Origin: Octopus bimaculoides
Lineage: Eukaryota
DNA length: 63,565 nt
Direction: 5' to 3'
Assembly: GCF_001194135.2 (NCBI RefSeq)
Contig: NC_068982.1
Location: forward strand, 161,370,132 to 161,433,696
Of this stretch, positions 1 to 60,187 are shown one piece after another; within the stretch, counting starts at the first letter, position 1; the number at the start of each line of letters is the position of its first letter. Both the position numbers and the translations under genes were made by a program. A model generated the notes under the pieces. It searched no databases and had not been told where the DNA came from. It saw only the letters and a program-made list of their open reading frames with translations.

Positions 1-351
1 TATGAGCCCTTGCAGCATCCCTTCTGCTCTTCTGGAAACAGGCTGTTATTTTCTAGGTGTTTACTCACTCTCTGCGATATTATTGCAGTAAAGGCTTTGT
101 AGATCGTAGGGAGACAGGTTATAGGTCTATAGTTTTGTGGTTTCTCCGTTTCCGTGGATTTGGGGATTAAGATGGTTTTCCCATTTGTGAGCCATTCAGG
201 CATTGTTTCTGGATCTGCTATTATGTTGTTAAAGTTTTCTGCCAGCTTTTTATGCATTGCTGGCAGGTGTTTTAACCAGAAATTGGGGATCTTGTCGTGT
301 CCAGGTGCTTTCCAGTTGCTTAGTCTTTGCAGTGTCTGGGTGACCTCTTCA
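1..351 (-). mobile_element. Dong/R4-like non-LTR retrotransposon, 5'-truncated RT fragment running off the window start
   Basis: Manual minus-strand translation has no stops: EEVTQTLQRLSNWKAPGHDKIPNFWLKHLPAMHKKLAENFNNIIADPETMPEWLTNGKTILIPKSTETEKPQNYRPITCLPTIYKAFTAIISQRVSKHLENNSLFPEEQKGCCKGS. WKAPG.D...FWLK, PEWL..G.T.LIPK and NYRPITCL are typical of R4/Dong-type RT. Confidence 0.85.
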
Positions 352-358
352 GTTGTTG

Positions 359-389
<31 letters not shown>

Positions 390-390
390 C
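352..390. repeat. (GTT)n(ATT)n microsatellite
   Basis: Read directly. Confidence 0.9.
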
Positions 391-1043
391 ACCATCATTA
401 TTTATAATGGGATTTTTAGCAGTGTATTTTGACTTAGTTTGTGTGTAGTGTACCATAGGGGAAGATGGCTTTGTAGGCACATTTACAAAGCTTTTTAGTA
501 TTGCCAAGCAACAAATAGTTTAATATCTTACCCATTCAAAATTCTGCTATTGCCATTCAATCTCTTAAGTTGATCTAAAAGTTTAGTCTGTATGTTAAGC
601 AACAAATTCCTCAGTTGGTTTATTGCATTGGACTAAAAACTTAAAGATCTGATTTAATAACTTGTAAAAATTTACAAACTGGATTAGATCCAGTCTAAGA
701 ACTTCTGAGATTTTATTTTTTATATATATTATATCAATTAAAAACAATTTTGTTTTGGGATTTTCTGTTTGATTTTAAAAGTGATAGTGTTATAAAATAT
801 TCATTTTAATATATTGTGCAACGTCGGTGATGGCAATTGTGATGTGTATAATTTTGTTAATACCCACTTACACATAGACATATTTATTTTCTGCATATAT
901 GTGTAGAAAGTTTTGAATATCCTTTCTTCTTCTATAAAGTAAATATGAATTTAATGAAATGTCTTTAAGCGTTCTTCTGAAGAGATCTAAAATAGCAGAT
1001 ATATAAAAATGTTAAGGATGGTATAATTAAAGGAAAAATTTAA

Positions 1044-6025: not shown

Positions 6026-6306
6026 TAATAGACTAACTTGTGTGTCTTACAGTGTGGACTAGGTGCACTTCATTGTGCTTCTTCAGTTCCAGCATCTTGG
6101 TAATAAAAATACATGGTATCCAACATGTTAAGAGCACCATTTCAATATTTGACCAGAGATATATTTATGACTGTCCTTTTCATTATGAACTTCAAATATG
6201 TGACTATTTACAACTGGCCTTGTATTTCTTACCAGAATGCAATTCTGTTTTAGATGTTTTGTCATCAACACCAATTTAGAAAAATAATACAGAAATTAGT
6301 TTCTGT

Positions 6307-6478
6307 AAAAGCACTCACTACACTCTCGGAGTGGTTGGCGTTAGGAAGGGCATCCAGCTTAGAAACTCTGCCAAATCAGATTGGAGCTTGGTGTAGTCAT
6401 CTGGTTCACCAGTCCTCAGTCAAATCGTCCAACCCATGCTAGCATGGAAAGTGGACGTTAAACGATGATGATGATGAT
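6307..6478 (+). mobile_element. RTE 3' tail fragment (young)
   Basis: GAGTGGTTGGCGTTAGGAAGGGCATCCAGC ... CCAACCCATGCTAGCATGGAAAGTGGACGTTAAAC(GAT)5. Confidence 0.8.
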
Positions 6479-9400
6479 CTATAATAAGGATTCTAAAGCT
6501 GCCAAACCTATACCAATTTGGTAAAAGAGGCTGAAGTTCTGTTGAATGATGATGATAAATGAGATTGTAAAGATATACCAAAATACTGCACCTTTTTGTT
6601 TAAATAATCCAAGACATCAAAAATAATTTTGGTACAATTTGTGTGTGTTGATTTATAAGCCAAGGGATTGTTTGTAATGTCCATGTTGATTACCACCTTC
6701 CATCTAATTACTATTGTAATCATGTTCTCTAGTTGCACTTGTTGGTTGAAGAGAGAAGCACAATGGTTCACCTTAGTCATTATCACTGACTTAGGTGCTT
6801 GCTGGTTCAGCTGTTTAGTTAAACACCAGTAATGAAGAATTAAATAACAGTATATGACAAGGAAATTGAACAAAAACAACTAACAGACTATTATTTTTGT
6901 ATTCTAAACCAATCCTATTGTGTGACCTCATAGCACAAGACCAGGTTTACTAAGTTAATTTTATTCAAACCTCCTCTTCCTCCTCCTCCTTCACTCTCTT
7001 ATTATTTACTAAGCATGTTATTTAACTGAATTCTTCAACTCCCAAGTGTAGTTTTACTTTATAAATATAAATAAAATTGTCTTTAATCACTCTTTGTCCA
7101 CTCCTTACAAATTTAGAATATTTTTATAATTCTGGATGACTTGTAAATTGTAGGACCTTCTTCAATGTCCCGAAGAACATTGAAATGGGTGGTTTTCAAT
7201 ATGAGTTATCAGTTGAGAGAATCAGAGAGAAAATGGCAGGAGAGATTTCAGTGGGAGAACTTTGTGCTGAAACAGGGATCAGTAGAAGAAAATGTTACTG
7301 TAATTGAACTTTTTGATGAATTCTCAGTCTAGCAATATCTATTTAACAAATTATGTAATTTACTTGAAACATTCAATGTTGAAATATAAAAATAGCAAAA
7401 GTCACTCAGAAATGCCTGAACTGAATAAGTTGAAATAAAAAATAAAGCAAAAACATCACAAAAACTGTGATGTCCTAGCTGAAGTAAACAATGTAACAGG
7501 GACGGATAGGCTATGATATGAGAGAGATATAATGTGGCGAGCAAAGCTGTTGAAATCACAGATGCATGCAATGTGGCAATGTTACATGAGCTGTGATATT
7601 GAAATTACAGATACACAATGCAATAGAGATGTGTGGACTGTAATAAATCAATTAATTGACAGATAAGTTCCTTGTAATTGTTATTTTGTGATTGTGATCA
7701 CTTAACAAAAGAACAAAAATTCCTTCCTACACACACAATCTTGATACTTTAGGATTAACTATATGAAAGAATAGCTGAACATATAATTCCATCCTTTAAT
7801 TTCCTCTTTCTCTTAGGGGGAAAAAAAAAAGAAAAAAGGGATATGCTTAAAGGCAAATTGCCCAAAAGAAAAGCTAACAAATGCTTTAGATTATGTTATG
7901 TGTTCTAATGAAATTTCAAAATGTAATGCATTTAACTTAGGAAGTACCACCTACTTGTTATATGAATATTGATGGCTTATAAGTGTTGGAAGGCATCATC
8001 ATAGCAGCTAATGCAGCATTACAGTTTTTTGTCATGATCAATGATAGAAATGTCACTATCTTGCATATTAAAGAAAAAAATGCTTATTAGGTTTCTACAA
8101 CTACAACTTAACAATAATCATGATCTTCTCAGCTGTCAGCATGATTCCTGTGTCATAGGAGGATTGTAAGATTGCTTGCCTGTTTGCAAAATGTAAAAGA
8201 GAAAAGATAAGAGATGATGGGTGGATTGGAAGGAGTAGCTAGTGAGTGACAAAGCCATTTGTGCATGCCCCCCACACAAACACACACACACATGCATGTG
8301 TATGCAGTATCACATGATCAAATGGAAGGAGCAATAGCACTAAAAATCACAATAGGTATATTCCTACCAGACCAGAAAAAAACAAACTTTTTATTAGATT
8401 CCAGCAGTGGACAGTGGCCATGCTTGGGTTCTTCTTTCAAGGGTTTCAGTTTATCAATCCTAGTAATTATTTCATCTTGGTACTTACATTATCAATCTCT
8501 ATCAAGCTACTGAGTTACAACACACAGGAATGCAACATAAACATGTCTGTTTTAACCAGCATAAACATAAACACGCTACACACAAGCCCACATACATATG
8601 ACTGACTTCTGCACAGTTTCCGTCTATCAAATTCCTCTCATAAGGTATTGGTCAGCTTGAGATTACAGGAGAAGCTACATGCCCAAGGTGCTAAGCAGTG
8701 ATCATGTGGTTGTAGAGCAAAGTTTTTAATCACACAGCTATGATGTACTGGAGTACATTGAATTAGAATATCTTCTTTCCTTCTGCAACAATTACTGCTC
8801 CTGAAAATTAGATTACTGGATTAATTCAAGTGTTCTGTTGCTCCACATTACTGTGTGTCTCTGTCTATTTTTATATATTTAGTCAAAAGAAATGAGGTCT
8901 ATCGTCCCTTACATAATCCCCTCTCACTAGTGAGATAGATGTAGTTGTTATTTAGTTGGTAACATTAGGGAAAATTGCAGCTATAGGTAGCAAGGATTGG
9001 ACAAAGTAATTACAGCATTCTGAGTGTGGGGAACACTACAGTTAGATACCCCCAGAGATGTAGATAAGTTATGCAACTAGATAGTTCAAAATATTGGAGT
9101 ATTGTGGTAGAAAATAAACAAGAAACTACATAACTATGAGCTAGAGATTATAGTCCATTTGTGCATCAGTAGCATCAAGTAAGTTATGTGAGAAGTACTC
9201 CATTGTGAATCATGCTTGGAACTTTTGTAGAGAGTTGGTAACTAATCAGACTGAAATATTTTCTGGTTGTGAAGAGGAAACTCTTGTGATGCAGCTTTAG
9301 CTGTGACATAAAGTCCTTTCCATAAAAGATCATCAAAGATTAAGTTGGCATTTGTAATGGCTTTCAAGGTTTTATTTGTTTGTTGTTTATGTGTAGGAAA

Positions 9401-12669: not shown

Positions 12670-12857
12670 ATAGCTTGGTGACATGTAAAAAGCTCCCAGC
12701 ATACTTTGTAAAATGGTTGGCATTAGAAAGGACATCCAGCTGTAGAAATCAAGTGAATTCAGACTGGAACTTGGTGCAACTCTTCTTCTGCTTGCTAGCT
12801 CTGGTCCACCATCCAATTCATGCCAGCATGGAAAGCATGTCAAATAATGATGATGAT
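12670..12857 (+). mobile_element. RTE-type tail fragment
   Basis: Same GGTTGGCATTAGAAAGGACATCCAGCTG ... CATGCCAGCATGGAAAG ... (GAT)n motifs. Confidence 0.7.
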
Positions 12858-15743: not shown

Positions 15744-16235
15744 TAAACAACAGCATAAATGTTGGTCAAACCCTGAAATTAATCATGTTCTGAATAAATG
15801 TATTTTAATATTCTTTTGCTGGTTCCAGTCATTGGCCTATGGCCATACTGGGGCACTGTCTTCTAGTGTTTTAGTCAGTTATATCGACCACAGTATGTTG
15901 TCTCTATGAAACGGCTAAGTTTAACTAATCTGTTACACAGTCCCCAAATACCACAAGGTAATTTTGTTGTATGCACTCATACACAATTGTGTTAGATAAA
16001 TGTTAACACTGAATTTTAGAACTCTACAGTACTCAAGTTCTGATAGATTTCATGATTTTTATGATGTATTTGTGTTGGTTTCCATAGTTATTCTAATTTT
16101 GTGGGAATTCTATTTTGAACTGTATTACTGCCAACCAATGTTTCTCTGTTAAATTTTTTATTTCATTTATGAAATAAGATGCTCTGACGCCCTGTTAATG
16201 CATGGTCAACTGATGTGGAAGCATTGTACTTTAAA

Positions 16236-16300
16236 AAAAGCATGTCCAAGTTGTAAATTTCATGACTTAGTTATGAAATTTTCAACTTGGACATGCTTTT
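16236..16300. other. 65-nt near-perfect hairpin
   Basis: AAAAGCATGTCCAAGTTG (16236-16253) pairs with CAACTTGGACATGCTTTT (16283-16300); one T:T mismatch; AAATTTCAT pairs with ATGAAATTT; 9-nt loop. Confidence 0.9.
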
Positions 16301-16556
16301 AAATTTTCATTCATTAAAGAAACTTTAAACAAGGACATCTTGCATGTAAAACCTCATCCTTGTCATTGAACAGCCATCTTCTATGCTAGCATGAGTTGAA
16401 CAATTTGGAAGGATTCAGTGGATCCAAGGACTGCACCGAACATTAGTTGATAACAGGTACCTTAGTTGCAGCAGCTGCTAAAAGTAAACAAGCTACACAT
16501 CTTGTATAATACAAGAACCAAGTACACTGATTACAAAATAGCAAATATATCTTTAA

Positions 16557-23865: not shown

Positions 23866-25028
23866 GGTGCAACAGTATCAAAGAAAGGTTAACTGGGAAG
23901 ATAGTTTTTGTGTGTGGCAGATGCGCAGGGGCAATAAACACTGAAGATGTACAGAAAACAGATTCCGTCACATGCCAGGAGGGAAAACCTAGAAGTAGTT
24001 AATAGCTGACACGACCTAGGCAACGAAGTCTGTAGTGGGGGTGCTTGCTCTGAGAGTGTAGCAGCCAGAATAAGAATAACCTGGGCAAAGTTCAGGGAGC
24101 TCTTACCTCTGCTGGCAACTAAGGGCCTCTCGCTCAAGGTGAAAGGTAGACTGTATGATGCATGTGTGCAAACTGCCATGCTACATGACAGTGAAACTGG
24201 TTTGTGACTGCTGAGGACATGTGTAGGCTTGAAAGAAATGAAGCTAGTATGGTCTACTAGATGTGTAATGTCAGTGTGCTTACATGACAGTGTAAGCTCC
24301 CTGAGAGAAACGTTGGGCATAAGAAGCATCAAATGTGGTGTGCAAGAGAGACTGCTGGTATAGTCATGTGTTACGTATGGATGAGGACAGCTGTGTGAGG
24401 AAGTGCCACTCCCTAACTGTGAAAGGGACCTGTGGAAGAGGTAGACCCAGAAAGACATGGTAAAGCATGACCTTTGAACATTGGGCCTCACAGAGGCAAT
24501 GACAGGAGGCTGAGACCTTTGGAGATATTCTGTGATTGAGAAGACCCGGCAACTAAAGTGAGATTGCAGCCATGGCTGATGCCAGTTTTGCATGTCCGGC
24601 CCATTTAAGAGTACCCCTAATGTGTCAGGCAATATGATATGCTTGAGAAGACCTGTTGAGTCCAGTAAAACCAAAATTGTATCTGTAGCCAGTGCCCTCT
24701 GACTGGTTCCCAATCCGGTGGCATGTAAAATGCATCATCTGAATGTGATCAATACCAGTGTCTCCTGACTGGCTCCCATGCTGGTGGCACATAAAAAGCA
24801 CTATCCAAATGTGATCGATGCCAGTCCCGCTTGATTGGCTCCTGTGCCGGTGGCATGTAAAAAGGACCCACTACACTCTCAGAGTGGTTGGCGTTAGGAA
24901 GGGCATTCAGCTGTAGAAACATTGCCAGATCAAATTGGAGCCTGGTGCAGCCACTGGCTCTCTAGATCTCAAACTGTCCAACCTATGCCACCATGGAAAA
25001 CATATATTAAACAATGATGATGATGATA
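23866..25028 (+). mobile_element. 5'-truncated RTE-clade LINE: C-terminal RT/thumb region, 3' UTR and (GAT)n tail
   Basis: Frameshifted translation: ..KERLTGKIVFVCGRCAGAIN..LEVVNS*HDLG..ARIRITWAKFRELLPLLATKGLSLKVKGRLYDACVQTAMLHDSET..RLERNEASM..GTCGRGRPRKTW. (GAT)n tail. 12-bp TSD TATAATATAAAA at 23854-23865 and 25029-25040. Confidence 0.88.
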
Positions 25029-25052
25029 TATAATATAAAATATTATTATTCA

Positions 25053-25272: not shown

Positions 25273-28232
25273 CAACATATAGTATATATAACTCCTAGTA
25301 AATGTGAGTTCTACTCTTATTTGTCCATTCACTTGTGTGTATGCATGCATTTGTGTATACACACATGCACACAAAGTTAAAAATGAAACATCAATCAAAA
25401 TTTTAAAAATTCTACCAGAATTATATAATTGAATTATTATTCCCTGAAATGTCTGTTATCTAAGTCATATCTTGAAGAAACTATTTTATTGTCCTAATTA
25501 TTACATGTCTTTAGTTTACATTGCCACCCACCACATCTGTTATCATACTGGGGTTTTTTTTGTTTTTCTTTTGTAAGCCAGTTTCAGTTATAACATGCTA
25601 ATGTTATGTTGATGTTGGATACTTGTTCCAGCTCCCTTATTTTCTATTTCAGTTTATAAAAACACCTCAAGATAGGAAAGTGTGTAATTTAAAAATCCCC
25701 TCATTCAAAATGTCCACCCTTTTGACTTTACAATTCTCTTAGGTTTAAAATTGCTTTCCTATCCTTATCTTCTAGTTTTAAGTAAACATTTGATAGTTGA
25801 TGTTGGTTACATGGGTCTATCGCTCACAATGTACATCACTTTGAAATACTTTCTACATTGATATTGTATCACTTATTTATTGTTGGGTGTGGCTGTTTTA
25901 TTTTTATATCTTACTGAGTGGAATTGTAGCAATAACTTTTATAACCGGATTCCTTCTCTAAGTGCCAATTATTCCATTTGAGAAATTATATATAAGGACG
26001 GCTGTATTGCTGTGAAGCTAGGAATAATGTCTCATACGATATGAACTTCCTTTGTGTGATTAGAGACACAAGGTTCTGTTTTGTTTGATGTAATTAAAAA
26101 TAAAACTGGAGGTTGTTATAGTGAAATAAGGCAGGGTTCTTGCAGATAGACTATTTTGGATTGAAGTTAATATTCACAGTTTGAAAATATAAAAAAAGAA
26201 TCAAAAACCTGAAATCTGAATTTAGAACTGGTTGGTATAGTAATGTTCATGGTGTCTAGCCTCAGGGCAACCCTAAGATCCAGCAAATATATGATCAAAG
26301 TTGCTTCAGCTTGTGACTCTCGCCTCTTTTATTCAGATGTATTGTATCTAGGACTACATTATCTTATATATTCTTACTTTTGTAAAGTACTAAGACATAA
26401 AGAATGTAAGTAAGAATTAGTTTGTGTATTTTGTACTGAATCTCCCTTGTTAACTTTTGATGATTTAAAACTGGTATTATTTCCAACTAGAAGAGTAATC
26501 TGCTGTTTATCTGTATGTAACCTAATATAAGGTATGTTTGATATTATAGACTTTTCATGAATCCCTTGCCCAAACTAATGATATTCTTTCTATCACATCT
26601 GAACACCAGTGACAATAATGATGATTCATTTTAGTTTATCTTGTTATTTCCTCATCATCACTTTCTATGTAAACAGGTTAGCTAATGTATCAACCATTGA
26701 GATTTAGGTTTTTTTCTATTTACATTCTACTAACTATATATTCTGCTTTACAACAATTTATTACTCATTATGATGTATCTTTACTGTCTAAGTCATATAT
26801 CTTGAAGAAAATGTTTACATTCCCAGCCACCAACTCTTCCGGCATCCACCACAGCTCTTCCTAGTTTCATTCATACTGCATCATTGACTGCTATAATTCC
26901 TATAGTCCTTCTGACATCAACTTTATTCTGTTACTTATGTTTTTCTATTTAACATCTAATGCTTTCTTACAAAGGAGAATTCCTTTCTGATCAACAACCA
27001 AAATACTCTCTAAATGTTGGCAAGCACTATAGCTGAGAAGCTACTAGACTACTAAGCACATAATCTTAAGTTGATACCCTACTGTCTTTCTGATATATTC
27101 CTGTACATGATATAACTTAGCTTTCACCAGCTGGTAAAAAAAAAATCAGATTTCACATATTTCGCTGTAGAATAAATAAGTAGGGAACATCATTAAACTA
27201 TAAAAAATAATTGCTCCACAGTTGCTAATGAAGGAACCTCTATCTAGTCACTTGAAATCAATCCGGTTACCTTACCATCTTTAAAAAAATGAATATATTG
27301 AATGACTAATGAAGTCCTATATGAATGAAATAGCTTTAATTGATCAAGGTTGGTGTGGGACTAAATAATAATTGTTCCAACAAGTAAGCCATTTGACGAA
27401 TGAAAACAGATTTATATGAATCAGCAGAAAGTGTTATTACATGACATGCTACTAACTTATTCTTTATCAGTAATTGATATGTCATTAAAGTGAGTTGTTA
27501 CATGGGTATAAGGCCTTGGATTTCCTGAAGGAAACAAGATTGTATTACATATATGGGGTAGAGTTTCTTGAGAATCAGTACCTCCTCAGAGTTAAATTAT
27601 TATCAGCAGAAATTGAAATAGATATGTGGACTGCCAGGAGATTGCCTTTACATAGTTTAGTAGACTGTTCTGACATTCTATCCTTTCAGTTTACCTGAAA
27701 TGTCACTGCATCATGCAGATATTAAATACAGTATTTCTCCTAAGGAAGGAAAGCTGTAAAGATTGATAAAGAAGAGGTAAACGAATTGCTGTTACATAAA
27801 ATTAACATGGTTTTAAACTTTTTGTCCAACTCCATTTTGTTTTCTCATTAAAAGAGGGTGGAGTGGTGAAAATTTTCAGTAATCTTTTTAGAGGAGTACT
27901 CAGTTTAATACATTGAACATGGCAAACACAGTAACTTTGCTTTCAGTTTTAAGTAATCAAGACTTGCAAGTGTACAAAAGAGATCTAACTATTGTTGAAC
28001 AAGGCTTAACCAAAAAACAAGAGTAACAATTCAGAAGATTTTTTAATAGGTTGATCTGCTAATCTCAGTTAATAAAAATATGCAATGCAGTGAAGGGAAG
28101 AATAAATTGATGTGTCAGTCTTATTAGACCACCTCACATACTTGAGGCATAGTCATTCATACAGAAATAATTTATTCTCAAACACATGATAATGCTAATA
28201 CAATAGCATGAACTGCAGAAAAATCTGTTACT

Positions 28233-28304
28233 GGCTTGCCATGAAACTTGAACTCGCATCCTTATGATTATGCGTCAAGTGTTTTACCTTTAAGCTAAAC
28301 TGCC
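28233..28304 (-). pseudogene. Second copy of the tRNA-like sequence, inverted (anticodon reads CAT, probably CpG decay of CGT)
   Basis: Reverse complement GGCAGTTTAGCTTAAAGGTAAAACACTTGACGCATAATCATAAGGATGCGAGTTCAAGTTTCATGGCAAGCC aligns with 28585-28656. Confidence 0.55.
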
Positions 28305-28584
28305 CATTATGAATTCTTCTGCAATTTGAGGATTCATAAGTTTAGCTTTATAAGATGCTAATGTTAAATTCAACTTAGGATGAAAGTAAACAAAGTTTGC
28401 TTTAGAAGCTATTGTATTAGCATTATCATACATTTGAGAATAAATTATTTCTGTATCTTTCAATACATCTCGACACTTCTAAAGCAAATTTTGTTAGTTT
28501 ACTTTCATCATAAGTTGAATTTAACATTAGTGTCTTATAAAGCTAGATTTATAAATCCTAAAATTGCAGAAGAATTCGTTACTG

Positions 28585-28656
28585 GGCAGTTTAGCTTAAA
28601 GGTAAAGCACTTGACGCGTAATCACAGGGATGTGAGTTTGAGTCTCATGGCTGGCC
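28585..28656 (+). pseudogene. tRNA-Thr(CGT)-like sequence (pseudogene or repeat-borne)
   Basis: Hand-folded cloverleaf: acceptor GGCAGTT/GGCTGGC (1 mismatch, 2 G:U); D arm GCTT-AAAGGTA-AAGC; anticodon arm CTTGA-CGCGTAA-TCACA (3 of 5 pairs, CGT at 28617-28619); T arm GTGAG-TTTGAGT-CTCAT. Confidence 0.6.
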
Positions 28657-31469
28657 GGCAATGAATTTTTCTGCAATATATGGATAGTTTATCCTGTTCA
28701 TGCTATTGTATTAGCATTATCATGCATTTGAGGATAAATTACTTCTGCATCTTTCAACGCTTCTAAAGCAAACTTTGTTTGTTTACTTTCATTGTAAGTT
28801 GAATTTATAGTCATGTATCTGTAAGATTGATTAAAAAAAAAAAACTATATTCATATACAGGCACTGTACATATATTGGTATATTAGTCTGAAGGAAATAG
28901 CTGAAAAATATTATCTGCTTGGTAAGCGATGACATGCTGATACATGTGCAATTTTTATTGTTTAATCCCAGATCAGCTCTGATTCAGCAAATTTATCAGG
29001 GATTCCAAATTGTGACCATCCCATCTTTTATCCAGACTTTGTGTATGCTAGAACGACTTTATCCAATATGTCAATCCCTTTTTTAAAGTGTTTGGGCGTA
29101 ATTTCAAGTTCTTTTTGACTGACTACAAAGAGGTTTTGTATCCATTGTCCAGATACAGTTGTACCAAAGAGAGAAAAAAAAAACTAGTATTCTCACACCT
29201 CCTCACAACAAAATGTTCAACATCTATGACAATGGTAACATTCTTTGTATTTTGAAATACTTGAAAAATCTCTAAGCATGTGTTAATGAAAGAAAGACAT
29301 TCACAAGCCATCAGGAATTTGCATTTATTGGTATAAAATACATTATAATGCACTCATTCACATACATTATATACACTCATTCATACACCACTCATTCATA
29401 CACATAATTTAATAAATGTATATGTCTATGAATGGATTTGATATCTTGTTTACTAAATGGTTGCAGAAAATCTCTGCAATAAAACATACACTAAATGTAA
29501 AAGTCATTCAACACCTATTTTGTATGTGAGAAATACTACTATCTGGGCAGCTTTTCCTAATTTATGCAACACACACACACACTTCATAGGTTTTGTTTAT
29601 TTTTTTAAATATCTCTAGAATTGTGTAGTCTTGCGGCCATTCTTAATTAAAATAATTGGAGGAAAAATTGGTTGCTATTTCTTGTAGGTCAAGTAAATGC
29701 ATTGGGACTTTTCATTATTGGCTTGGAGTAATCTTAAGTCGTTTAGCCTCAGATCAGCCTAGATCAAACAGACCTATGATAGAAAGCATTCCACTTAAGA
29801 CAAGTCCATCTTTTTGTACATCAAAAACTATATTGTTTATTAGATCTTCTAAGATAAGGAAATTGACTTGCTATTTCCAGCAAGTCAAGTGACCACTCAA
29901 ACTTCTTTGCAGACCATTAAATCCAGGTGATATCCATTGATATCATTTCGAGTGGGGAGAATATTGTTTCGTAGTAACACAGTAGGCAGACCAGCCAATA
30001 CTCTCAATATTCTTGCCTACCAGAAAACAACTTTCTCTTAAACTATTCATATTTCATTCCTTCAGAGATGTGTTTAGTGTATGTAAGAGGTAATATGAAT
30101 TGTTTTTCATTATTTCAGTTTCGCAGACATGGCCTGTCATGTATACATATTCATGGGAATGTGCACAAATCTTGATATTTCACTTGATGTTTGGCATAAT
30201 GACTGGTTACACTAATCTTTCAAAGATCTATGAAATATAAAAATTCCTAACATGGAAAAAAGGTGAGGGTTAGCGATAGGAAGAGCATCTAGCCATAAAA
30301 TTTTACTTCATATCAATCCCTGTCCTGCTCATGCTGGCATAGACACATGGATGTTGAATGAATGAATGAGAAAAATGGGTGGTGTAAGATGTGATTTACT
30401 GTATGTGTAACATAGGGAGAAAGATAACTTGCGAGAGGAAGAGATTATAGTGTTTCAGTTACATGCATATATCTATATGTTTCGTAAATGAATAAATATT
30501 CAACAAATGTTTACATAGATATTATTATTGGTTATTATTAATAAAATAAATAACAATAATATAAGAGGCCAGCAAGCAAAAGCCGATACATAGCAAATCC
30601 CAAATTTTATAATTGAGTGCAACACAAGGTGCCAACATTGCTGTAAAAATCAGTGTCAAAAAAACCCTAATAACCACCATTTCACTGATTTACTTACAAC
30701 ATGCACTTTTCAAATAAGGATTTATGTGTGTAAATGTGTGTGTGTTAGTATATTAACAATCTATAAATATATAGACTGTATATCGAACATTGACATCATG
30801 TATCCAGTTGATTGTTAAAAACAAATACAAAATAAAACTGATCAGGGATTTTGAATCTTCAAGATCAGCTTCCATCTGAAACTGTCTCCTATTTACATTT
30901 TTTTTTTTCTTCCCAATAGTTCATAAGCATTCCCACTGAGTTTTTCAAATCCTCAAAAACAGTTAACAATGTGCACAAACTTCTGACTGGTCGCTCTCTT
31001 CAGTAAAAGAAACCATTTTAAACCTCCTCCCCTTCCACTTTAATTTCTCATGCACTTTATTATTCACAGTGTATTTTATTTTCATAAATGCTGTAAATTG
31101 TTTTGCTGTTGTTTAGGCACAAGTCAACCTTGATCCAATCAATCAATTAACCAAATCAGAGGCAATCTAACAATGTCTATTACCCCTAAAAGAGTTGCAT
31201 ACTCTGACTATGTTATCCAACATGTCTTTTTTAAAAGGGAGTGTGGTTTGAAGAAGATTTGGTTGTTATTTCTAGTAGAGTGAGTTTTAGCTTTTAGTCA
31301 AGATAACCCCATAGTGCTGTTATCTAAAATAATTGATGTATTTATATCCAAATTAAAATCTCCGGCAAAGTTTTATGATTTCATGAATAGACTGAAGACT
31401 GAATCTTTGGAATCTCTTGGTGGATTTTTCTTAACTGTATAAACTGATTAGTCAATGAAGTGACACCAC

Positions 31470-42999: not shown

Positions 43000-43238
43000 A
43001 GTGTGGTTGCCTTTGCAGGCTCACAAGTACTGGTGCTATGTAAAAAAGCACCCATACCAATGCTGCATAAAAGCATTCAGTACACTCTGTAAAGTGGTTG
43101 GCATTAGGAAGGGCATTCAGCCATAGAAACTATGCCAAAACAGATGTGGAGCCTGAACAGCCCTTCAGCTGGTCAGCTCCTGTCAAACCATCCAACCCAT
43201 GCCAGCATGGAAAACAGACATTAAATGATGATGATGAT
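43000..43238 (+). mobile_element. RTE-type tail fragment
   Basis: TACACTCTGTAAAGTGGTTGGCATTAGGAAGGGC ... CCAACCCATGCCAGCATGGAAAACAGACATTAAAT(GAT)n. Confidence 0.78.
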
Positions 43239-46200: not shown

Positions 46201-46630
46201 CATTTTGTTGCTTCCTTTTATGAGTGATATGCATATCAGAAAAGTTGCAACAGAGACAAGTTTCTCTGTGAAACTTGGTCTCTGTTTTACTCATGTTATT
46301 AATAAGTGACACAGTCATTTATTCATAGAACAAAGCTTATAAGAAAAACTGATTAAAACAGTTGAGTATTCTGCTGGTATTGTATTTGCTCCTCATTACT
46401 GTATGATGTATAAAATAATACCAGGTGTATAACGTGGATCTATTCAAATGACTCTCAACCCTACGAATTTGTGAGTGTTCCAAAGTTAAAATTCCTTAAT
46501 ATAGTTGCTATAAAGAACAGAACTGCCAGTAGCTATTCATTAGGGAGCCCCTGTCTGGTCACTTGACCTGCTATTCCCTCAAATCAAATCACACCAACAT
46601 TGCCTTTATTTATTTTTAGAAAGTATTAAA

Positions 46631-47020
46631 GGTGTAGGAGTGGCTGTGTGGTAAGTAGCTTGCTTACCAACCACATGGTTCCGGGTTCAGTCCCACTGCG
46701 TGGCACCTTGGGCAAGTGTCTTCTACTATAGCCTCGGGCCGACCAAAGCCTTGTGGGTGGATTTGGTAGATGGAAACTGAAAGAAGCCCGTCATATATAT
46801 TTATATATATGTATGTGTGCCTGTGTTTGTCTCCCCCCCCCCCAACATCGCTTGACAACTGATGCTGGTGTGTTTATGTCCCCGTAACTTAGCGGTTTGG
46901 CAAAAGTGACCAATAGAATAAGTACTAGGCTTACAAAGAATAAGTCTTGAGGTCGATTTGCTCGACTAAAGGCAGTGCTCCAGAATGACTACAGTCAAAT
47001 AGCTGAAACAAGTAAGAGTA
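46631..47020 (+). mobile_element. Full-length tRNA-derived SINE with CORE-like segment (octopus OR-type, by recollection)
   Basis: Head with A box GTGGCTGTGTGGTAAG and B box GGGTTCAGTCCC; CORE-like CACCTTGGGCAAGTG; internal (TA)n(TG)n; tail CTGAAACAAGTAAGAGTA. Near-identical to the copies at 58328 and 63358. Confidence 0.85.
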
Positions 47021-49899: not shown

Positions 49900-50142
49900 A
49901 ACTAAGAGGTCTTTGTCTTGCAAGTTACCTGGTGACCCTGTTAGTATTGGTGCCACATAAAAAGCACTTGTGCCTATGTCACATAAAAAGCACCCAGTAT
50001 ACTCTGTAAAGTGATTGATATTAGGAAGGGTATCCATGTCAAAACAGATAATTGGAGCCTGGTGCAGCTCTCCAGCTTGCCAGCCCTGGTCAAACTGTCC
50101 AACCCATGCCAGCATGGCAAGCAGACATTAAATGATGATGAT
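49900..50142 (+). mobile_element. RTE-type tail fragment
   Basis: GTCTTGCAAGTTACCTGGTGACC ... CCAACCCATGCCAGCATGG ... (GAT)n. Confidence 0.78.
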
Positions 50143-50404
50143 AAGAAGAAGACAGGATGGCCAAGACTGAAATGCTTTTGATCAACAGTGTGCTCAGTTA
50201 ATTCTGACCTCAGGTTAAACAACAGCAACAAATTTAAAGAAAGTGAGAAACTTGCAGCAACCTGAATTCACAAACACAGCTGGGAAGAGAACAGTGATAT
50301 TTTCTTCCCTGCTATGTTTGTAAATTTAGCTTTGCTGAATGCTTCTCGCTTTCTCTAAATCTATGATTGTAAATAAACATTGAATGATATTTCTTCTATT
50401 TCAG

Positions 50405-50591
50405 ATAAATACCCACTGTCTTCAAACCCCACAGCATGTGCATGGCAACCAGGTGAGAAACATAAAGTTGCTGTGGGAGATGAGGATGGTCGTATCATAG
50501 TTAAAGATGTTCGTAAACTACAAGACATGCCAGTTTCTTCATATAAACCTCATTACCGACCAGTACATAGATTGCAGTTTTCACCTCAAAA
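50405..50591 (+). CDS. WDR77: WDR77/MEP50 exon: DKYPLSSNPTACAWQPGEKHKVAVGDEDGRIIVKDVRKLQDMPVSSYKPHYRPVHRLQFSPQ
   Basis: ttcAG at 50403-50404, GTAAGT donor at 50592; 187 nt. Overlaps ORF 50380..50595. Corresponds to MEP50 LAWHP...GDENG...HSQCVTGLVFSP. Confidence 0.93.
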
Positions 50592-50638
50592 GTAAGTATC
50601 AGCCATAGTACTTTTTTTTAAAAAAACATAAACAAACA

Positions 50639-50811
50639 GGCACAGTCGTGGCTGTGTGGTAAGAAGCTTCCTTCCCAGCCACATGTTTTGGGGTTCAGTC
50701 CCACTGCATGGCACCTTGGGCAAATTTCTTTTGCTATGGCCTCGGGCCAACGAAAGCCTTGTCTGTGGATTTGGTAGATGGAAACTGAAAGAAACCCATC
50801 ACATATCTATG

Positions 50812-50876
<65 letters not shown>

Positions 50877-51072
50877 TTGTGGCTGTGTTTGTTCCCCACT
50901 ATTTGACAACCAGTATTGGTGTCTTTACGTCCCCGTAACTTAGCAGTTCAGCAAAAGCAACTAATAGAATAAGTACAGGCTATAAAAATAAGTACTGGGG
51001 TCGATACATTGAACTAAAAATTCTTCTAGGCAGTGCCCTAGCATGACCACAGTCTAATGGCTGAAACAAAAG
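50639..51072 (+). mobile_element. Full-length CORE-like SINE in the 982-bp WDR77 intron
   Basis: Same family, with a long internal (TA)n. Candidate TSD ATAAACAAA at 50628-50636 and 51073-51081. Confidence 0.85.
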
Positions 51073-51651: not shown

Positions 51652-52979
51652 GTAAGTATAATACGAGACAACAATCCTGGTTGTGATTAGCCTGAAGGTC
51701 TATTCCATTTGAGGATAATCCTTTCAATGAGGATTTGTAAATTATTATTCTTAGCAGATTATATTTATGTGCAGCAGTGACACTTTTCATTGTCAGTATA
51801 GTGTAAATCTGGTTTTCTGTGTTTAATGTCAACTATATACTGACACACATATCCACCTATCCTCCAACAGTAAATCTGCAATACTATTTAAAAAAAAAAA
51901 TTCCATTAATCTCCCTGGATTACTTCAGAATTTTCAAGAGGATAGAGATAAAATGTGACTCATTTACTTCTGTGGTTAATAACTTATTTAATAAATTGAT
52001 GCTGAGTATTTAAGTGTGGTAGTGTCTCACAGTAAATTACTATCATGTTATTTACTGAAGCTGTAATTAATGAAAAAAAAAGAAAATCCTGATGAAGTCA
52101 GTCTGTTCTTTGAAAGTAACTGAAGGATATATAGAGAAGTCAGTAGTCAGTACATGCTAGGATGGGACTGGATAAGATGTAATTGATAGACCTTTCTGTA
52201 GGCTACTCATTGTTAAATGCAAATGAATGGTTCTTGGGAGCTATTCACACTGTAAATTAGATCAGTATTGGTAGTAAATTCATTGAAGAATTTAATGTAC
52301 AGCTAGGTGTTCACCAGGACGATGTTTGCTAATCCTTTCCATCTTCAAATAAACAAAAGAATGTCCAATTAGTCATCCTTGGAAATGTTTATGTACTGAC
52401 AGCCTAGTCTGTAATCTACCAAAGGTCCCAGTAGTGTTTGGACTCTAATGATGCAATTTCTATATGTATGTGTTCATTTACCAATGAACATGTGCATATA
52501 GAAATGTCTGGGCTGAGTGGAAGAGAGAATATTCTTGGAATGTATCAGTCATATTCTGGGGTATGTGGGGTGGGGTGCATGCTGTTAAGAAGTTTATTCC
52601 CAACCACGTGGTTTTCAGTTCAGTTTCATTACATGGCACTTTTGGCAAGTGTCTTCTACTCTAGCCCCAGGTTAACCAAAGCTTATGGGGAGAATTTGGT
52701 AGACAATAACTGAAATAAGCCTTTGTGTGTGTGTGTGTGTGTGCCTATTTGAGCCTGTGTTTGTTCACACAGTTACACACTACAAAAGTTGCAGGCTGCA
52801 AACAGTGTTATTGTTACTTCTGCCAACACATTGACCATTGACTTCACACATTTGAAAACATGTAAAATAAGAGATCCTTTACTTTGATAAAAGGTTAGTG
52901 ACAGTAAAGGTGTCAGGCTGTAAAAACAATGCCTCAGTAATATACTCATCTAACAAACAAAACGTGGTTGTCTTTGGAG

Positions 52980-54212: not shown

Positions 54213-55204
54213 TAATGTGTGTGTGTGTGTGGTCGGTCAGTCTGGATCCTTATGCTTCAAATAGTGGGATTGTACAGGTTGCTGTTAGTTCTTTCTGTTG
54301 CTTTTATTGTTCTTACTTTCTGAGATGATCCTCATAGACAATTGAACTTGTGATTCACGGCATTCACAAAATGTTAAGTATTCACTTAACTAATTCACTT
54401 TCTATACCCTAACTTGAGAGAGAGGAAGAGATTTTGAGGAGGTGATTGTGGTAATCTCCAATAAGATCTTGATGTTACAACAAGGAATGGAGATGTTTGA
54501 TTTTTATCTTCTTGCAATATGGCTAGATATTACATCTCTCATCTTGTCAAAGAAGACAGTGATTCTCCATATTAACCTTCTAAAGCTGTATACTTAAAAA
54601 GTTTGCTTCACAACCTTTAGTCCCACTCTGTAGTAACCATAGCATGTGGTCAATTCAAGCTTTGCAAGTGAAACTAAAACTATGTGACAGCACAGTTTTC
54701 TCCGTGGTAAACCTAATCTACCTGGTTTAACACACCATCACCACTACCGTCACTCTGCCCCTGGTGGTTTTAGTAGGGTCTACTTTGTTGCAAGCATTAG
54801 GACCATGTCTCTAATCAACTATTTTAATACTTTCCTGAGCTACAACAATCCATCAGTCATAGTTTCTTCTTTTTGTTTCTTCATGCCAGTTTTGGACACA
54901 TTGCAAAAGTTCAAAAACATCAACATTCCTTGGCAAGTAACTGTGATTAAAAAAAAAAAAATTATCAGAATACAAAACTAATTGGAAAAATCCTGCTGAA
55001 CTATTGATAGATTTAATTATAATATATTTGTAGTTTAGCATTCTAGTCCCTCATTAGTGTATTTACCTGCTTGAAACTCACTTGGATGGATGAAACCCCC
55101 ACCCACCCAAGTAAAATATTAGGTAATTATGAATCCTCTCTGCTCCCCTCATACTTTATCTTTCACCACCTTGTTTTAAGCATCCTATCTTCTTGCATAT
55201 TTGA

Positions 55205-55435
55205 AAGGTCTCTCTAGTCTTGCAAGGTACATGGCAACTTCATTAGTGTTGGGGCCACATAAAAAGCATCTAGTACCCTCTGTAAAGTGGTTACCCTTAA
55301 AAAGGGTATCCAGCTGTAGAAATCATGCTGAAACTATAACACTGGAGCAAGACTTGCTACTCTCTGATCCCTTGTTTCCTATTAAAACAACCAATCTGCA
55401 ACTAGCATGGCAAGCAAATGTAAAATGATAATGAT
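55205..55435 (+). mobile_element. RTE-type tail fragment
   Basis: Same motif order as 49900-50142, more diverged. Confidence 0.65.
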
Positions 55436-55737
55436 TAAGTTTCTGGTTAGTAATGATAAACAAATGTTTTGGTTTGTAGCTAAATGTTATTGTTGGGAAC
55501 AGACATTACTATGTGGTCTGAAATATTTTCATACATTGTGGTAACTATTTATATAGTTGTTCATTAAGAAGTTGGTGATTTGCCAAATAACTTAAAAGGA
55601 AAAGTAATTTACATTGCTTCCAGCATTTTTCTGAAAGGATTTTAATGATGAAAAAAAGTCTTCGAATAGTTTTATTAAATATTAATAAATTTGAATAGTT
55701 TTATTAAATATTGATAATTTTTTTTTTTTTATTTCAG

Positions 55738-55990
55738 CTTCAAAAATACTTCACATCAAGATTTTGTGCAAGGTCTGTCTTGGAGTTGCGGTACAGAAAT
55801 TTTTACATGCGGTTGGGATTCACTGGTATTAACTCATGATCTTAGTAAACTAAAGGAATTACAACAGATTAGTACTCTGAAAGTAGAAGTGAATGGAAAT
55901 AATCAATTGAAAACTGAACGGTTTGAGAAAACTGAATGTTGTGAAGAAAAAATCTCTGTTTTAGCTCCAAATGCCATTGAAGCTAATTAG
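55738..55990 (+). CDS. WDR77: WDR77/MEP50 last coding exon: IFKNTSHQDFVQGLSWSCGTEIFTCGWDSLVLTHDL plus a 48-aa tail, TAG stop
   Basis: Poly-T tract plus tttcAG at 55736-55737; in frame with the previous exon. HQDFVQGLSW...TCGWD matches MEP50 HRDFVRDATW...TVGWD. Stop at 55988-55990. Confidence 0.93.
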
Positions 55991-56422
55991 AACAAAATCT
56001 ATGGAGCACACAGTGTAAGAGAAGATAATCAGAGCAGGCAGAACAATAGAGTTCGGCAGTTATTAACAGACAGAACTACTAGCTCATAAGTATTAGCTGG
56101 TCTCATTACGAACGATCTCTACACATCAATGAAAGGGAACACAAATCTTTTCCCTTCCCATTTATGTAAATCAACCTAGTACCAATGAGCACAGGTCCAG
56201 TCCAGTCCTCGGCTTATTACTTTTATGAAAACTGATAAACTTGGGATAAACATGTCTCTGTCTTTTTATTTCCTCTACTAATCTGCACATTTTATATTTC
56301 CATTTCAGTTTTAATACCTTTTGGTTATATAAAAAAAAAGTGTAATATTATACTGCCTCTCAATGTTGGTTTGTGTGAATACTCCAGATTTTGCTTCTTT
56401 CTAACGAAATATGGAGCTGGGA

Positions 56423-56542
56423 AATAAAAATTCACATATCACATTTTATTTATTGGTATTTTCTTTATTTTTTCATAAATATTGTTTAAACTTAAGTATT
56501 ACTCCAGTAAGGCCAGAGCCATAGTGGTTTGGTTCAAATAAA
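56423..56542 (+). promoter_or_regulatory. Candidate polyadenylation signals of WDR77
   Basis: AATAAA at 56423-56428 and 56537-56542, 430-550 nt after the stop. AATAAA is common in AT-rich DNA, so support is weak. Confidence 0.3.
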
Positions 56543-56783
56543 GTTAAATGCATGTAGTCAAGAAAACACTAATGAAACAGACATATTAAAGATGTATTCA
56601 GACAGTAGAGCTAAATTTATAATATCAAATATGGCTTCTTTTTCTTGAAGATGGTTGTCTGGTTTGAGATTTGGCTGCTGTTTCTAACAGGTTAAGTGAC
56701 TATGAAGAAACTCTCTCATTGGCTTGTATGTATTATAGTTTCGCTTTTAAAAACATTTACAGATTAGTCTGTTTGATTCTTAA

Positions 56784-57515: not shown

Positions 57516-58320
57516 TTACATTTTCCATTGACAATACATCTTGTAACTCAGCTGCATGAGTTCATATGTGATTGATCCCCTGTTGGAGACTGTTAAGTAA
57601 ATATTCTTTGGGACCTTGATTTTAGGCACATTTTTCAAACCTTTAAGGATAATCATTGTTTTCGGCATCTTTTCTGCAGCATTAACACACAACACAGCAG
57701 TAAAGCGAGCTTTGGTAGCACCACAGTGGCTAGCAGCTACATTTTTATTGCCAACAAAGTCTATGGTTGTTGAACACATGTCAATGTATACAGGTGTTTC
57801 ATCTTTATCTGCTGTTAATACTAGAATGCTATCTAGATAGTCACTGGCGATTTGTGCCTTTTCTCCAAGTGTTTTATTGTCTGCTTGACCAACATGTGTA
57901 ATCTTTCTCACTGTCAGTTTATTCTGTTTCGTGAAATTGAAAATCCATTTATCAGAACATCTAAAGCTGTTCATTTCAATTCCGAGCCTTTTTACCAATT
58001 CTAAAGTATATTCCCGTAAAGGGCGATAATTTACAATTATATTGTTTGCACGCTGAACAACAATCCAGTGTAAGAGTTCAATCTCTAGATTTCTATGTGC
58101 TGGTCGTCTTCCTCCACCAATTGATCTGTTCCTCCTCTTGTCTGACATTGATTAACTCAGTTTCTTTTGTGCATCATTCTCTCAATCATTTTCTATCAAT
58201 ACCTAAGTCTCTTGACGCAGCAGATAAATTGCCAGAATGTTTTTTCACTCATTTAATAGCACTCAATTTTTCATTAATGGTATATGATCGTTGAATACGT
58301 TTTGATTTTCTTTCGACTCC
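57516..58320 (-). pseudogene. Decayed pogo-family (Tc1/mariner superfamily) transposase: Brinker-like DBD, CENP-B-type HTH and the start of the DDE domain
   Basis: ORF 57516..58148 has GGGRRP..LE.ELLHWI..QR, FRCSDKWIFNF.KQNKLTVRKITHVGQ, DETPVYIDM and RFTAVLCVNA...KTMIILKG. An upstream frame gives RSYTINEKLSAIK*VKKHSGNLSAASRDLGIDRK*LRE*. One frameshift near 58150; truncated before the second catalytic Asp. Confidence 0.85.
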
Positions 58321-58327
58321 ATTATTG

Positions 58328-58690
58328 GGAGTGGCTGTGTAGTAAGTAGCTTGCTTACCAACCACATGGTTCCGGGTTCAGTCCCACTGCATGGCACCTT
58401 GGGCAAGTGTCTTCTACTATAGCCTCGGGCCAACCAAAGCCTTGTGAGTGGATTTGGTAGACGGAAACTGAAAGAAGCCCGTCGTATATATGTGTCTGTG
58501 TTTGTCCCCCCAACATCGCTTGACAACCGATGCTGGTGTGTTTACGTCCCCGTAACTTAGCGGTTCAGCAAAAGAGACCGATAGAATAAGTACTAGGCTT
58601 ACAAAGAATAAGTCCTGGGGTCGATTTGCTCAACTAAAGGCAGTGCTCCAGCATGGCCGCAGTCAAATGACTGAAACAAGTAAAAGAGTA
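58328..58690 (+). mobile_element. Young CORE-like SINE abutting the 5' end of the pogo coding region
   Basis: Same family; complete body and tail CAAGTAAAAGAGTA. Confidence 0.87.
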
Positions 58691-60187
58691 GATGTAGAGC
58701 AAATGAACATGACAACAGAATGCAAACAAGAGCACTAACTCTGTTTCAATTTTTAACCACATATCCGCCCATGGGCGATCTAATGGATGGGTGGATTTTC
58801 AGAGAACACCAGTACTACTTAAGATTTTATAAGTGTCATGTATCACTGGGTGAGTTTAATCAGTATGTGTTTTCTAACTTTACCAAATACACAACAGCAA
58901 TAAATGATGACACATACTACTATAGGATACAAACTCTGTAGTCTTTTTCTGATATGGGCCATCCAAATATGGTTCTATAACTGCTGTACATAGTTGGGTA
59001 CATATGTGTGTGCACACATATTCAACTGTTGCTGGATGGATATGTTTTTTTCCGTATATAGAAACAAGTTGGCAGTATCTCTTACAAGAAATATGCATAT
59101 AAAGGGCCTAATATTCTGATTTAAAAGCACTTTGTAATGAAAATCATTGGATTTTTTTTTTTAATGATTGTAAATTAACACTTCAACTGATTGAGTTCAG
59201 TTACCTGCTGGTGTCAACTTTTTCATTCTTCTTGTGTCTGTAAAATAAATAGCAGTCATGTTTTGAGGACAAATTTACTGTCCTTCATGATAATGTGGAC
59301 TTGGAGTTCAACAAATCTGCATTCCATCTTACGTTTGAAATAGGGTCATAATATTCATTTTTCTATAAGATTGCTCCATTGTTTGTGAGCAAAATTTTCA
59401 TGTATTGACAAATACCTTGGTGATCTCACCCCATGCCAATTTCTTTTGTTCATTGCTAATGTTATTTAGCCTCAGTTCAACTCTGATTGAGCAGATTTAT
59501 GATCAAAGGCATTCCAACCAGTCAGTTTTTATACAATGCTAATGCTGTTTTAAAGTCCCAGATTGACTCATTCAGGCTTACCTTATTTAAAGCAACAGGT
59601 CTATATGACTGCATTGAACCATTTATCAACTTGAAGTTCACAAAGGTTGTAGTGCAGATGTTCGCGAGAAAATTCATTTAAGTAAAAGGTATCATTGGTT
59701 GTGAAAAGGTTTGGAACCGTGGACCTATTAGACATTTCCACGTTGGGTTGCTTTGTCGTTTCTATTTGGCAGTGAAAAGTTTATGCAACCAAGGGAGATA
59801 AAGAGTTGCACTATTTATCTCCCTTCCATGCAGGCTTTTTCTATTTAATAATTAATCATATTCAATATTTTATACTAAAATACTCAAGTGGGTTATTTTT
59901 TCCTATTAATACGAAGTGTTTGAAGTATATTTCCCACCATCTTAATTTCGTTTTTACACTTATACAGTATTTTGGAGCATACTAAAATACAATATAGCAT
60001 ACTTCAGTATTCTGAATAGTTCATTCTATAGTTTATCCCCAACACTGTCAATGAAAATTGACTGTTAAGATTCGAGATACACCCTCTTTTTTTTCCCCTC
60101 GCAATATCAAACATTCTACGAAAATATAGTGCTCAAAAACTGAATTTTATATAGATGAAGACGAAAAATCAAATTTTAAATTAACTC

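Follow-up and report, generated by a model that had tools for sequence, protein, structure and literature searches.

Within a 63,565-nucleotide stretch of the Octopus bimaculoides genome (RefSeq assembly GCF_001194135.2, contig NC_068982.1, positions 161,370,132 to 161,433,696 of the forward strand; hereafter the window, numbered from its first letter) there is a 650-bp block at 28157-28806 in which a non-coding unit of 294 bp is present in approximately 2.3 decayed copies, one of them inverted. An exact 8-bp direct repeat is located just outside the edges of this block, and a segment resembling a tRNA is present in each of the two larger copies. We tentatively favour an origin as a single old retro-insertion of the type made by Penelope-like elements, a reading that we hold to be plausible but short of probable.

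Anatomy of the repeat block

Positions within the unit are counted from 28408. The complete unit (unit B) therefore spans 28408-28701 (294 bp) on the plus strand, and it is followed directly by a partial copy at 28702-28806 (copy C) and preceded by an inverted copy on the minus strand at 28159-28409 (copy A). The direct repeats that start at 28408 and 28702 were recovered both by a repeat finder and by blastn, with a spacing of 294 and an identity of 89% in ungapped blocks. Copy C corresponds to unit positions 1-116 with 10 bp missing, and this deletion shifts the spacing of the next block from 294 to 284. With so few copies, the array was not picked up by Tandem Repeats Finder. Copy A matches unit B at 85% identity over unit positions 67/69-268 and at 94% over unit positions 1-49 (blastn and MAFFT), and the alignment places one deletion of 4 bp and one of 20 bp within it. 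Thus, the initial annotation was accurate in its description of a plus-strand repeat with a period of 294 from 28408 and 28702, and of an inverted, diverged copy at 28159-28408 (28159-28409 in our alignments).

The inverted copy is circularly permuted. Its minus strand reads unit 67-294 and continues unbroken into unit 1-49, wherein unit position 49 forms the outer left end. The unit-unit junction that is crossed in this way is also crossed, with the same sequence, by the direct copies. Because both arms span the junction, their template must have exceeded one unit, either by being multimeric or circular or through template jumping. The plus-strand part can also be divided at unit position 49, which yields unit 1-49 (28408-28456), a full 294-bp period that reads unit 50-294 and then 1-49 (28457-28750), and a third partial copy that represents unit 50-116 minus 10 bp (28751-28806). 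The inverted copy joins the direct copies with a 2-nt overlap (GC, 28408-28409).

The 8-bp flanking repeat, ATAGTCAT, occupies 28149-28156 on the left and 28807-28814 on the right, and homology to the unit ends at 28159 and 28806. A 2-nt filler (TC, 28157-28158) separates the left flanking repeat from the first base that is homologous to the unit. The ends of the block read ...GTTGAATTT followed by ATAGTCAT, and ATAGTCAT followed by TCATACAG. The chance of an exact shared run of at least 8 nt is 0.0047, as judged from 200,000 random pairs of 20-nt windows taken from the same sequence. Comparison of the next 100 nt on each side with the rest of the unit gave local alignments no better than those obtained with shuffled sequence. 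No poly(A), A-rich or microsatellite tail is present at the ends of the block, and there are no terminal inverted repeats (TIRs), the left end being unit position 49 and the right end unit position 116.

When 28149-28814 is folded as RNA, the predicted energy is -353 kcal/mol, compared with -136 +/- 6 kcal/mol for shuffled sequences (z = -35). In the predicted structure, 28159-28408 pairs with 28476-28750 to form a hairpin of approximately 250 bp that is closed by a 67-nt loop (28409-28475) and leaves a 3' overhang of 56 nt (28751-28806) unpaired, in agreement with the duplex of roughly 250 bp that had been proposed for this region. An assembly artefact was considered as a source of the inverted arrangement and dismissed, since the arms are about 12% apart and differ by indels, and the nearest N run starts approximately 4.6 kb away. 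Open reading frames (ORFs) that carry X mark an N run at about 23.09-23.5 kb.

Comparison of the full period at 28457-28750 with the inverted copy reveals 31 mismatches among 251 aligned positions, corresponding to a Jukes-Cantor (JC) distance of 0.135, and these mismatches comprise 27 transitions and 4 transversions. At several of the sites that contribute to the divergence of about 12% between copies, TG stands opposite CA, and at others CG stands opposite TG or CA. The 27:4 excess of transitions and the TG/CA pairs indicate that methylated CpG sites decayed after insertion. Where all three copies overlap, the pairwise differences are 3, 4 and 5 of 49 in unit 1-49 (the contrast between 3/49 and 5/49 carries no statistical meaning) and 2-5 of about 45-56 in unit 67-116. 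This star-like pattern is compatible with a simultaneous origin of all copies, which would have been identical at insertion. Similarly, as far as can be told from the sequence, the divergence fits one old event that was followed by neutral decay of approximately 4-7% per copy, with much loss of CpG.

For scale, a JC distance of 0.09 corresponds to about 25 million years (My) in Octopus vulgaris (PMC13282606). By this measure our data suggest that the insertion is roughly 10-20 My old, a figure that is inferred rather than measured. As a separate observation, the transition bias and the paired TG/CA sites across 28408-28806 versus 28159-28409 imply that the locus was subject to CpG methylation in the germline. 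CpG methylation is expected for mollusc gene bodies.

The tRNA-like segment and its terminator-like T5 run

The plus-strand tRNA-like segment lies at 28585-28656 and includes an A box, TAGCTTAAAGG, and a B box, GAGTTTGAGTC. It is the sole match to the Rfam tRNA model (RF00005) in the window at E values up to 1, and its score of 29.0 bits is exactly the gathering cutoff. ARAGORN reports no tRNA at default settings; at an 80% threshold it returns a Thr(CGT)-like cloverleaf in which U33 is replaced by G33 and the acceptor stem contains a G.G mismatch. The minimum-energy fold of this 72-nt segment is not a cloverleaf (z = -0.2). Alignment to 28585-28656 locates a degenerate counterpart in the inverted copy (28233-28304, minus strand), which yields no Rfam match and no ARAGORN call even at a 70% threshold. 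The two segments differ at 10 of 72 positions (a count made by eye from the alignment), which is no fewer than in the rest of the unit. These differences show no compensatory pattern, and one T-stem pair is broken in the inverted copy.

The marginal detection of one copy, the presence of G33, the G.G mismatch and the 10/72 divergence do not fit a functional tRNA gene. The tRNA shape is under no visible constraint, and both tRNA-like parts are dead. Prior to CpG decay the B box would have been GAGTTCGAGTC, which is canonical. We considered whether the tRNA-like part might derive from a mitochondrial insert, and this was ruled out by its D and T loops, which are of the canonical nuclear type.

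A run of five T residues (T5) that resembles a terminator for RNA polymerase III (Pol III) is found 9 nt past each tRNA-like segment, at 28666-28670 on the plus strand and at 28219-28223 on the minus strand in the inverted copy. The plus-strand run forms part of the 3' arm of a local 18-bp inverted repeat (28563-28580 and 28660-28677) that encloses the tRNA-like segment, such that 28563-28677 can form a hairpin of about 115-131 nt. The 131-nt region 28555-28685 has a predicted folding energy of -50.6 kcal/mol (z = -6.5), and the local repeat is kept in the inverted copy (z = -2.7). With a T5 run so close behind each tRNA-like segment, transcription by Pol III would be expected to stop after about 85-90 nt and to leave out the rest of the unit. 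The cassette has the appearance of a tRNA pseudogene carried along as a passenger together with its terminator, rather than of the head of a short interspersed nuclear element (SINE). A tRNA-derived SINE was rejected as an identity for the unit because of the internal position of the tRNA-like part, the T5 run 9 nt on, and a 3' end that has no A-rich, microsatellite or LINE-derived tail (LINE, long interspersed nuclear element).

These features modify the way in which the tRNA-like segments had been described. Two tRNA-like genes pointing away from each other had been proposed, and the segments at 28233-28304 (minus) and 28585-28656 (plus) do point apart, but 'tRNA' is a generous name for a pair of which one member is detected, and that one marginally. 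A mid-unit position had also been ascribed to the tRNA, and the segment is indeed internal in either phase, although 'middle' has no meaning for a tandem repeat that lacks known termini. The suggestion that Pol III might drive the whole unit is unsupported, given the T5 run beyond the tRNA-like segment in both copies. The putative flanking duplication, the exact edges of the block, the permutation of the inverted arm, the dead state of the tRNA-like parts and the T5 stops are additions to the initial annotation.

Origin of the block

The 8-bp flanking repeat is a putative target-site duplication. Its placement at the edges of unit homology argues that the block was inserted in one piece. Furthermore, the inverted arm lies inside the duplication and only 2 nt from its left copy, which argues that this arm arose with the insertion and not later; a later inverted duplication would need to land within 2 nt of a pre-existing left edge. 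Thus, the whole 650-bp block, including the inverted arm, probably entered the chromosome in one event. A one-step insertion of this kind would imply that the original empty site read ...GGCATAGTCATGTATCTG....

A different history is that a tRNA pseudogene and its surroundings were tandemly duplicated in place and then partly inverted, through template switching or fold-back repair, and that the flanking repeat is coincidental. The divergence of about 12% would leave ample time for such stepwise events, the inversion junction exhibits 2 nt of microhomology, and the three adjacent copies are the only ones seen in the window and in external searches. We nevertheless consider local rearrangement unlikely. 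It needs a coincidence with a probability of about 0.005 for a flanking repeat to occur exactly at both homology edges, as well as an inverted arm that happens to end within 2 nt of the left edge already in place, and the similar pairwise distances among the three copies do not suggest successive events.

Target duplications of hAT transposons are 8 bp in length. The flanking repeat would therefore fit a foldback or hAT-like non-autonomous DNA transposon, with long arms made of repeated subunits, that was moved by an 8-bp-duplicating transposase. The inverted arms are indeed long and unequal, and octopus has active hAT families as well as active TIR families that are unclassified (PMC13282606). 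However, the extreme ends of the block (unit 49 on the left and unit 116 on the right) are not mutual inverted repeats, hAT-like terminal motifs are missing, and the 56-nt right overhang is unpaired. Such an origin is highly improbable.

Three other classes of element were examined and set aside. For a Helitron, the 5' TC is present, but inspection by eye revealed neither a CTRR end nor a 3' hairpin, and the target is not between A and T. For a long terminal repeat (LTR) retrotransposon or a terminal-repeat retrotransposon in miniature (TRIM), the LTRs would be 28408-28523 and 28702-28806. These have no TG..CA ends, no sequence resembling a primer-binding site (PBS) follows 28523, and the place of the left duplication is taken by an inverted copy. 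A retrozyme was discarded because no unit contains a type I hammerhead.

Another conceivable history is that a staggered double-strand break captured DNA derived from a tandem array of the unit elsewhere, such as an extrachromosomal circle, with the inversion stemming from the source or from repair. The unit-unit junctions in both arms would then reflect a tandem or circular source, and the flanking duplication and the lack of retroelement tail features are consistent with such a capture. We regard it as quite improbable, since it presupposes a tandem array of the unit, for which there is no sign, and since an inverted-plus-direct arrangement with a near-flush edge is more typical of insertion based on reverse transcription.

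Reverse transcription by Penelope-like machinery is the origin that we tentatively favour. Insertions of Penelope-like elements comprise inverted and partial tandem copies, often carry a tail of 30-40 bp at one end, and are flanked by target duplications of varying length, and their non-autonomous relatives form head-to-tail insertions (PMC8557442). In the octopus block, 28408-28456, 28457-28750 and 28751-28806 follow one another head to tail at a 294-bp period, and these would represent, respectively, a leading 49-nt 5'-truncated copy (pseudo-LTR), a full-length copy and the tail. Upstream lies an inverted copy (28159-28409) that, in this phase, is without about 17 nt of the 5' end and that overlaps the direct copies by 2 nt at 28408. 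The one-sided extension at 28751-28806 is 56 bp long and continues the tandem, and ATAGTCAT is present on both sides. This combination of an inverted 5'-truncated copy, a partial tandem and a target duplication, without poly(A) or TIRs, matches the insertion signature of Penelope-like elements, and the one-sided extension may correspond to their tail. The premise of the initial annotation that inverted-plus-direct copies are typical of these elements is thus in line with the published signature (PMC8557442). Penelope-like elements abound in octopus, and in Octopus vulgaris there are 30 recently active Penelope families as well as an older Penelope-like burst (PMC13282606).

An RNA intermediate and Penelope-like machinery are what we infer from this match. 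The RNA would have been non-coding, roughly 294 nt in length, and equipped with a tRNA-derived module, wherein a cassette like a tRNA pseudogene with its own T5 stop is held inside the 18-bp stem. Perhaps this RNA was reverse-transcribed at a staggered chromosomal break. The product would have been compound, consisting of the inverted 5'-truncated copy (28159-28409), the leading copy (28408-28456), the full copy (28457-28750) and the one-sided extension (28751-28806). If the 3' end of the RNA is set at unit position 49, then the inverted and nearly full copy would abut the left duplication by its 3' end and would be followed by a 49-nt leader, the full copy and the 56-nt tail. The 8-bp target duplication would have been made around the whole block, and the copies, identical at that time, would subsequently have undergone neutral decay.

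A related possibility is that LINE-type target-primed reverse transcription (TPRT) with twin priming produced the block, such that the direct 1.36 copies were made from the 3' end of the RNA and the inverted arm by internal priming of the second DNA end on that RNA. This proposal accommodates the 8-bp flanking duplication, the joining of an inverted 5' segment to a direct 3' segment with a 2-nt overlap, and the end of the inverted arm at the internal unit position 49, which is where internal priming predicts it to be. LINEs of the RTE, CR1, Dong-R4 and L1-Tx1 groups are active in octopus (PMC13282606), and the window itself contains a putative fragment of a LINE-type reverse transcriptase (RT) at 3-401 (minus strand). 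Unit 1-49, which occurs in both arms, also shows the fewest differences (3/49), but the contrast with 5/49 is statistically meaningless. The right end is without a poly(A), A-rich or microsatellite tail, a multimeric template or template jumping by the RT is needed in addition to the inversion, and products that are both tandem and inverted are reported to be unseen in non-LTR TPRT (PMC8557442). We therefore view twin priming as a rather unlikely source.

Several observations weigh against the Penelope-type origin that we favour. Rfam searches at E values up to 10 found no hammerhead or other ribozyme, and there is no CUGANGA core on either strand. The hammerhead that is present in canonical Penelope-like pseudo-LTRs (pLTRs) and in non-LTR retrozymes is missing here, though the Naiad clade of Penelope-like elements is also without one (PMC8557442). 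The outer ends of the arms are located at different unit positions (49 versus 116), and the tail measures 56 bp (66 bp before its deletion) compared with the published 30-40 bp. Pfam scans of 15 ORFs of the window recognised no Penelope-like RT or GIY-YIG ORF, and their sole RT match was the sub-threshold one to RVT_1 at 3-401 (minus strand). An 8-bp duplication is also the target size of hAT. Lastly, no other copy that would mark the unit as part of a mobile family was found in the 63.5 kb of the window or in the external collections searched.

These searches were as follows. Neither blastn nor a profile search revealed a further copy of the unit in the window. Several interspersed repeat families are present there in 4-7 copies each, and the unit matches none of them; the lack of a second copy shows only that the unit is far rarer than these common families. 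A protein search with the 94-aa ORF of the unit returned no matches, an exhaustive HMMER search of a 98-aa frame against 1.84 billion representatives returned one low-complexity match only, and a 1610-aa concatenate of the open frames from 26.8-30.2 kb had no matches. No paper was recovered by a full-text literature search with six k-mers from the unit, and a 22-mer from the tRNA-like part had no match in bacterial or archaeal genomes or in viral contigs. The 22-mer at the start of the unit, GCTATTGTATTAGCATTATCAT, has one match in a metagenome collection (Ga0209977_10020873, 1953-1974). This is a chance match that is unrelated to the element. The contig resembles prokaryotic or phage DNA, and the 22-mer is located where a coding region apparently begins, beside two tRNA-like stretches.

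The idea that the unit belongs to an undescribed retroelement thus survives in a Penelope-type form, which is partly supported by the architecture and the 8-bp duplication, whereas the Pol III-driven and satellite variants of this idea are unsupported. A satellite monomer is unlikely because the block has 2.3 copies and is bounded by unique DNA and by the target duplication. A circular RNA template had also been suggested, and no ribozyme able to make circular RNA was found.

The one property that the locus seems to retain is that any read-through transcript would fold into a double-stranded RNA (dsRNA) hairpin of approximately 250 bp. This raises a speculative proposal, which we consider doubtful, that octopods harbour a family of short, ribozyme-less elements with tRNA cassettes that are copied by a Penelope-like RT. 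Such elements would be a Penelope-dependent counterpart of SINEs, and their compound inverted and tandem insertions would seed long dsRNA hairpins in host transcripts that serve as natural substrates for the ADAR and small-RNA pathways of cephalopods, which are highly active. If the unit does prove to be a dispersed family, then the Penelope-like machinery of cephalopods would mobilise short tRNA-bearing RNAs without a hammerhead. This would widen the range of non-autonomous Penelope-like partners beyond retrozymes and MRC1-type elements, and would provide a ready source of intramolecular RNA duplexes of about 250 bp in a lineage with heavy A-to-I editing. If the unit is confined to a single locus, then the block would matter little beyond itself, as a well-preserved case of a compound insertion, or of a rearrangement, that surrounds a dead tRNA-like sequence.

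Window context and comparison with known systems

The window has a GC content of 33% and includes several other features. Open frames at 50377-50592 and 55718-55987 (both plus strand) resemble exons of a WD40/beta-propeller protein gene, and Logan assemblies contain a 74-aa product with 94% identity and a WD40 protein with 38% identity. An intron of this gene, or the region upstream of it, may harbour the repeat block at 28.5 kb. A search for the orthologous locus with translated WD40 exons recovered only a 1.7-kb Logan contig (SRR11869391) that is 85% identical to 54979-56570, which is too far from the block, and the ORFs of the window have no entry in the protein collection. A 210-aa frame at 57516-58148 (minus strand) matches the Tc5/pogo-type transposase DNA-binding domain (PF03221, E = 2.9e-06) and is probably the remnant of a pogo/Tigger-like transposon. 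The frame at 3-401 (minus strand) runs off the start of the window; it matches RVT_1 with E = 3e-05, below the Pfam cutoff, and carries a KAPGHDKIPNFW motif typical of the RTs of non-LTR elements (LINEs).

Other repeats were also noted. An interspersed repeat with the motif AATAAGTCCTGGGGTCGATTT is present in five copies that share 70-88% identity (46625-47018, 50617-51069, 52583-52764, 58328-58686 and 63336-63565), and the Rfam tRNA model at E values up to 1 finds no tRNA-like head in them. An exact match to this motif, which is known from octopus sequences, lies at 58607-58627, and two further matches have 2-3 mismatches. Units of 66-67 bp are tandemly repeated at 2604-2729 (1.9 copies) and 24699-24868 (2.6 copies) with about 75% matches and in opposite orientations, and they are situated in an interspersed repeat found at about 2433-2700, 6305-6480, 12676-12857, 24767-25035, 43068-43238, 49958-50144 and 60186-60378. 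An almost perfect hairpin, about 78 bp in size, is found at 16228-16305, AAAGCATGTCCAAGTTG(T/A)AAATTTCAT ... ATGAAATTT(T)CAACTTGGACATGCTTT, with equal sub-threshold microRNA-family matches on both strands (36 bits, compared with gathering scores of 90-92). This could be a small foldback element like a miniature inverted-repeat transposable element (MITE) or a hairpin RNA locus.

Among known systems, SINEs of octopus were reportedly described by Ohshima and Okada in 1994. Like tRNA-derived SINEs (SINE2), the block is short and non-coding, has a target duplication and includes a segment of tRNA origin in which A and B boxes can be recognised. It differs from them in that the tRNA-like part is not terminal and has a T5 run 9 nt behind it, in having no A-rich, microsatellite or LINE-like tail, and in being a compound insertion instead of a monomer truncated at the 5' end. 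Nor does the unit resemble the SINE-like repeats that are abundant in the window.

TRIMp3 elements (Helenus, Ajax and Cassandra) are non-autonomous LTR retrotransposons that carry a sequence resembling a Pol III gene, and tandem arrays of them occur (PMC10886601). The shared feature is a passenger cassette that resembles a small-RNA gene within a short non-autonomous retroelement. In TRIMp3 the tRNA-like sequence is inside the LTRs, and there are 5-bp duplications and a PBS. Here, in contrast, the direct repeats (28408-28523 and 28702-28806) do not contain the tRNA-like part, which is located between them. The block also has neither TG..CA ends nor a PBS, and it includes an inverted copy. The 5'-inversions of L1 that are attributed to twin priming also have an inverted 5' part and a direct 3' part within one target duplication. 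The octopus block differs by being without poly(A) and by the homology between its two parts, which exists because the template was repeated.

Metazoan non-LTR retrozymes consist of tandem units of 150-400 nt with a type I hammerhead, have circular RNA intermediates and derive from Penelope-like pLTRs (bioRxiv 10.64898/2026.07.22.740005). The block differs from these in having no self-cleaving ribozyme and only 2.3 copies, one of which is inverted, but it is similar in unit size, in head-to-tail layout and in its likely connection with the machinery of Penelope-like elements (bioRxiv 10.64898/2026.07.22.740005). Compared with Penelope-like elements themselves, the unit is very short (294 bp), non-coding and furnished with a tRNA-derived cassette, and its extension, at 56 bp, exceeds their usual 30-40 bp. 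Nevertheless, insertions of Penelope/Poseidon, Neptune and Naiad/Chlamys, and of MRC1 of Chlamydomonas, are alike in their pseudo-LTR tandem with an adjacent inverted 5'-truncated copy. They also share with the block a target duplication of non-canonical length and the absence of poly(A), their tail at one end may correspond to its extension, and Naiads resemble it further in having no hammerhead (PMC8557442).

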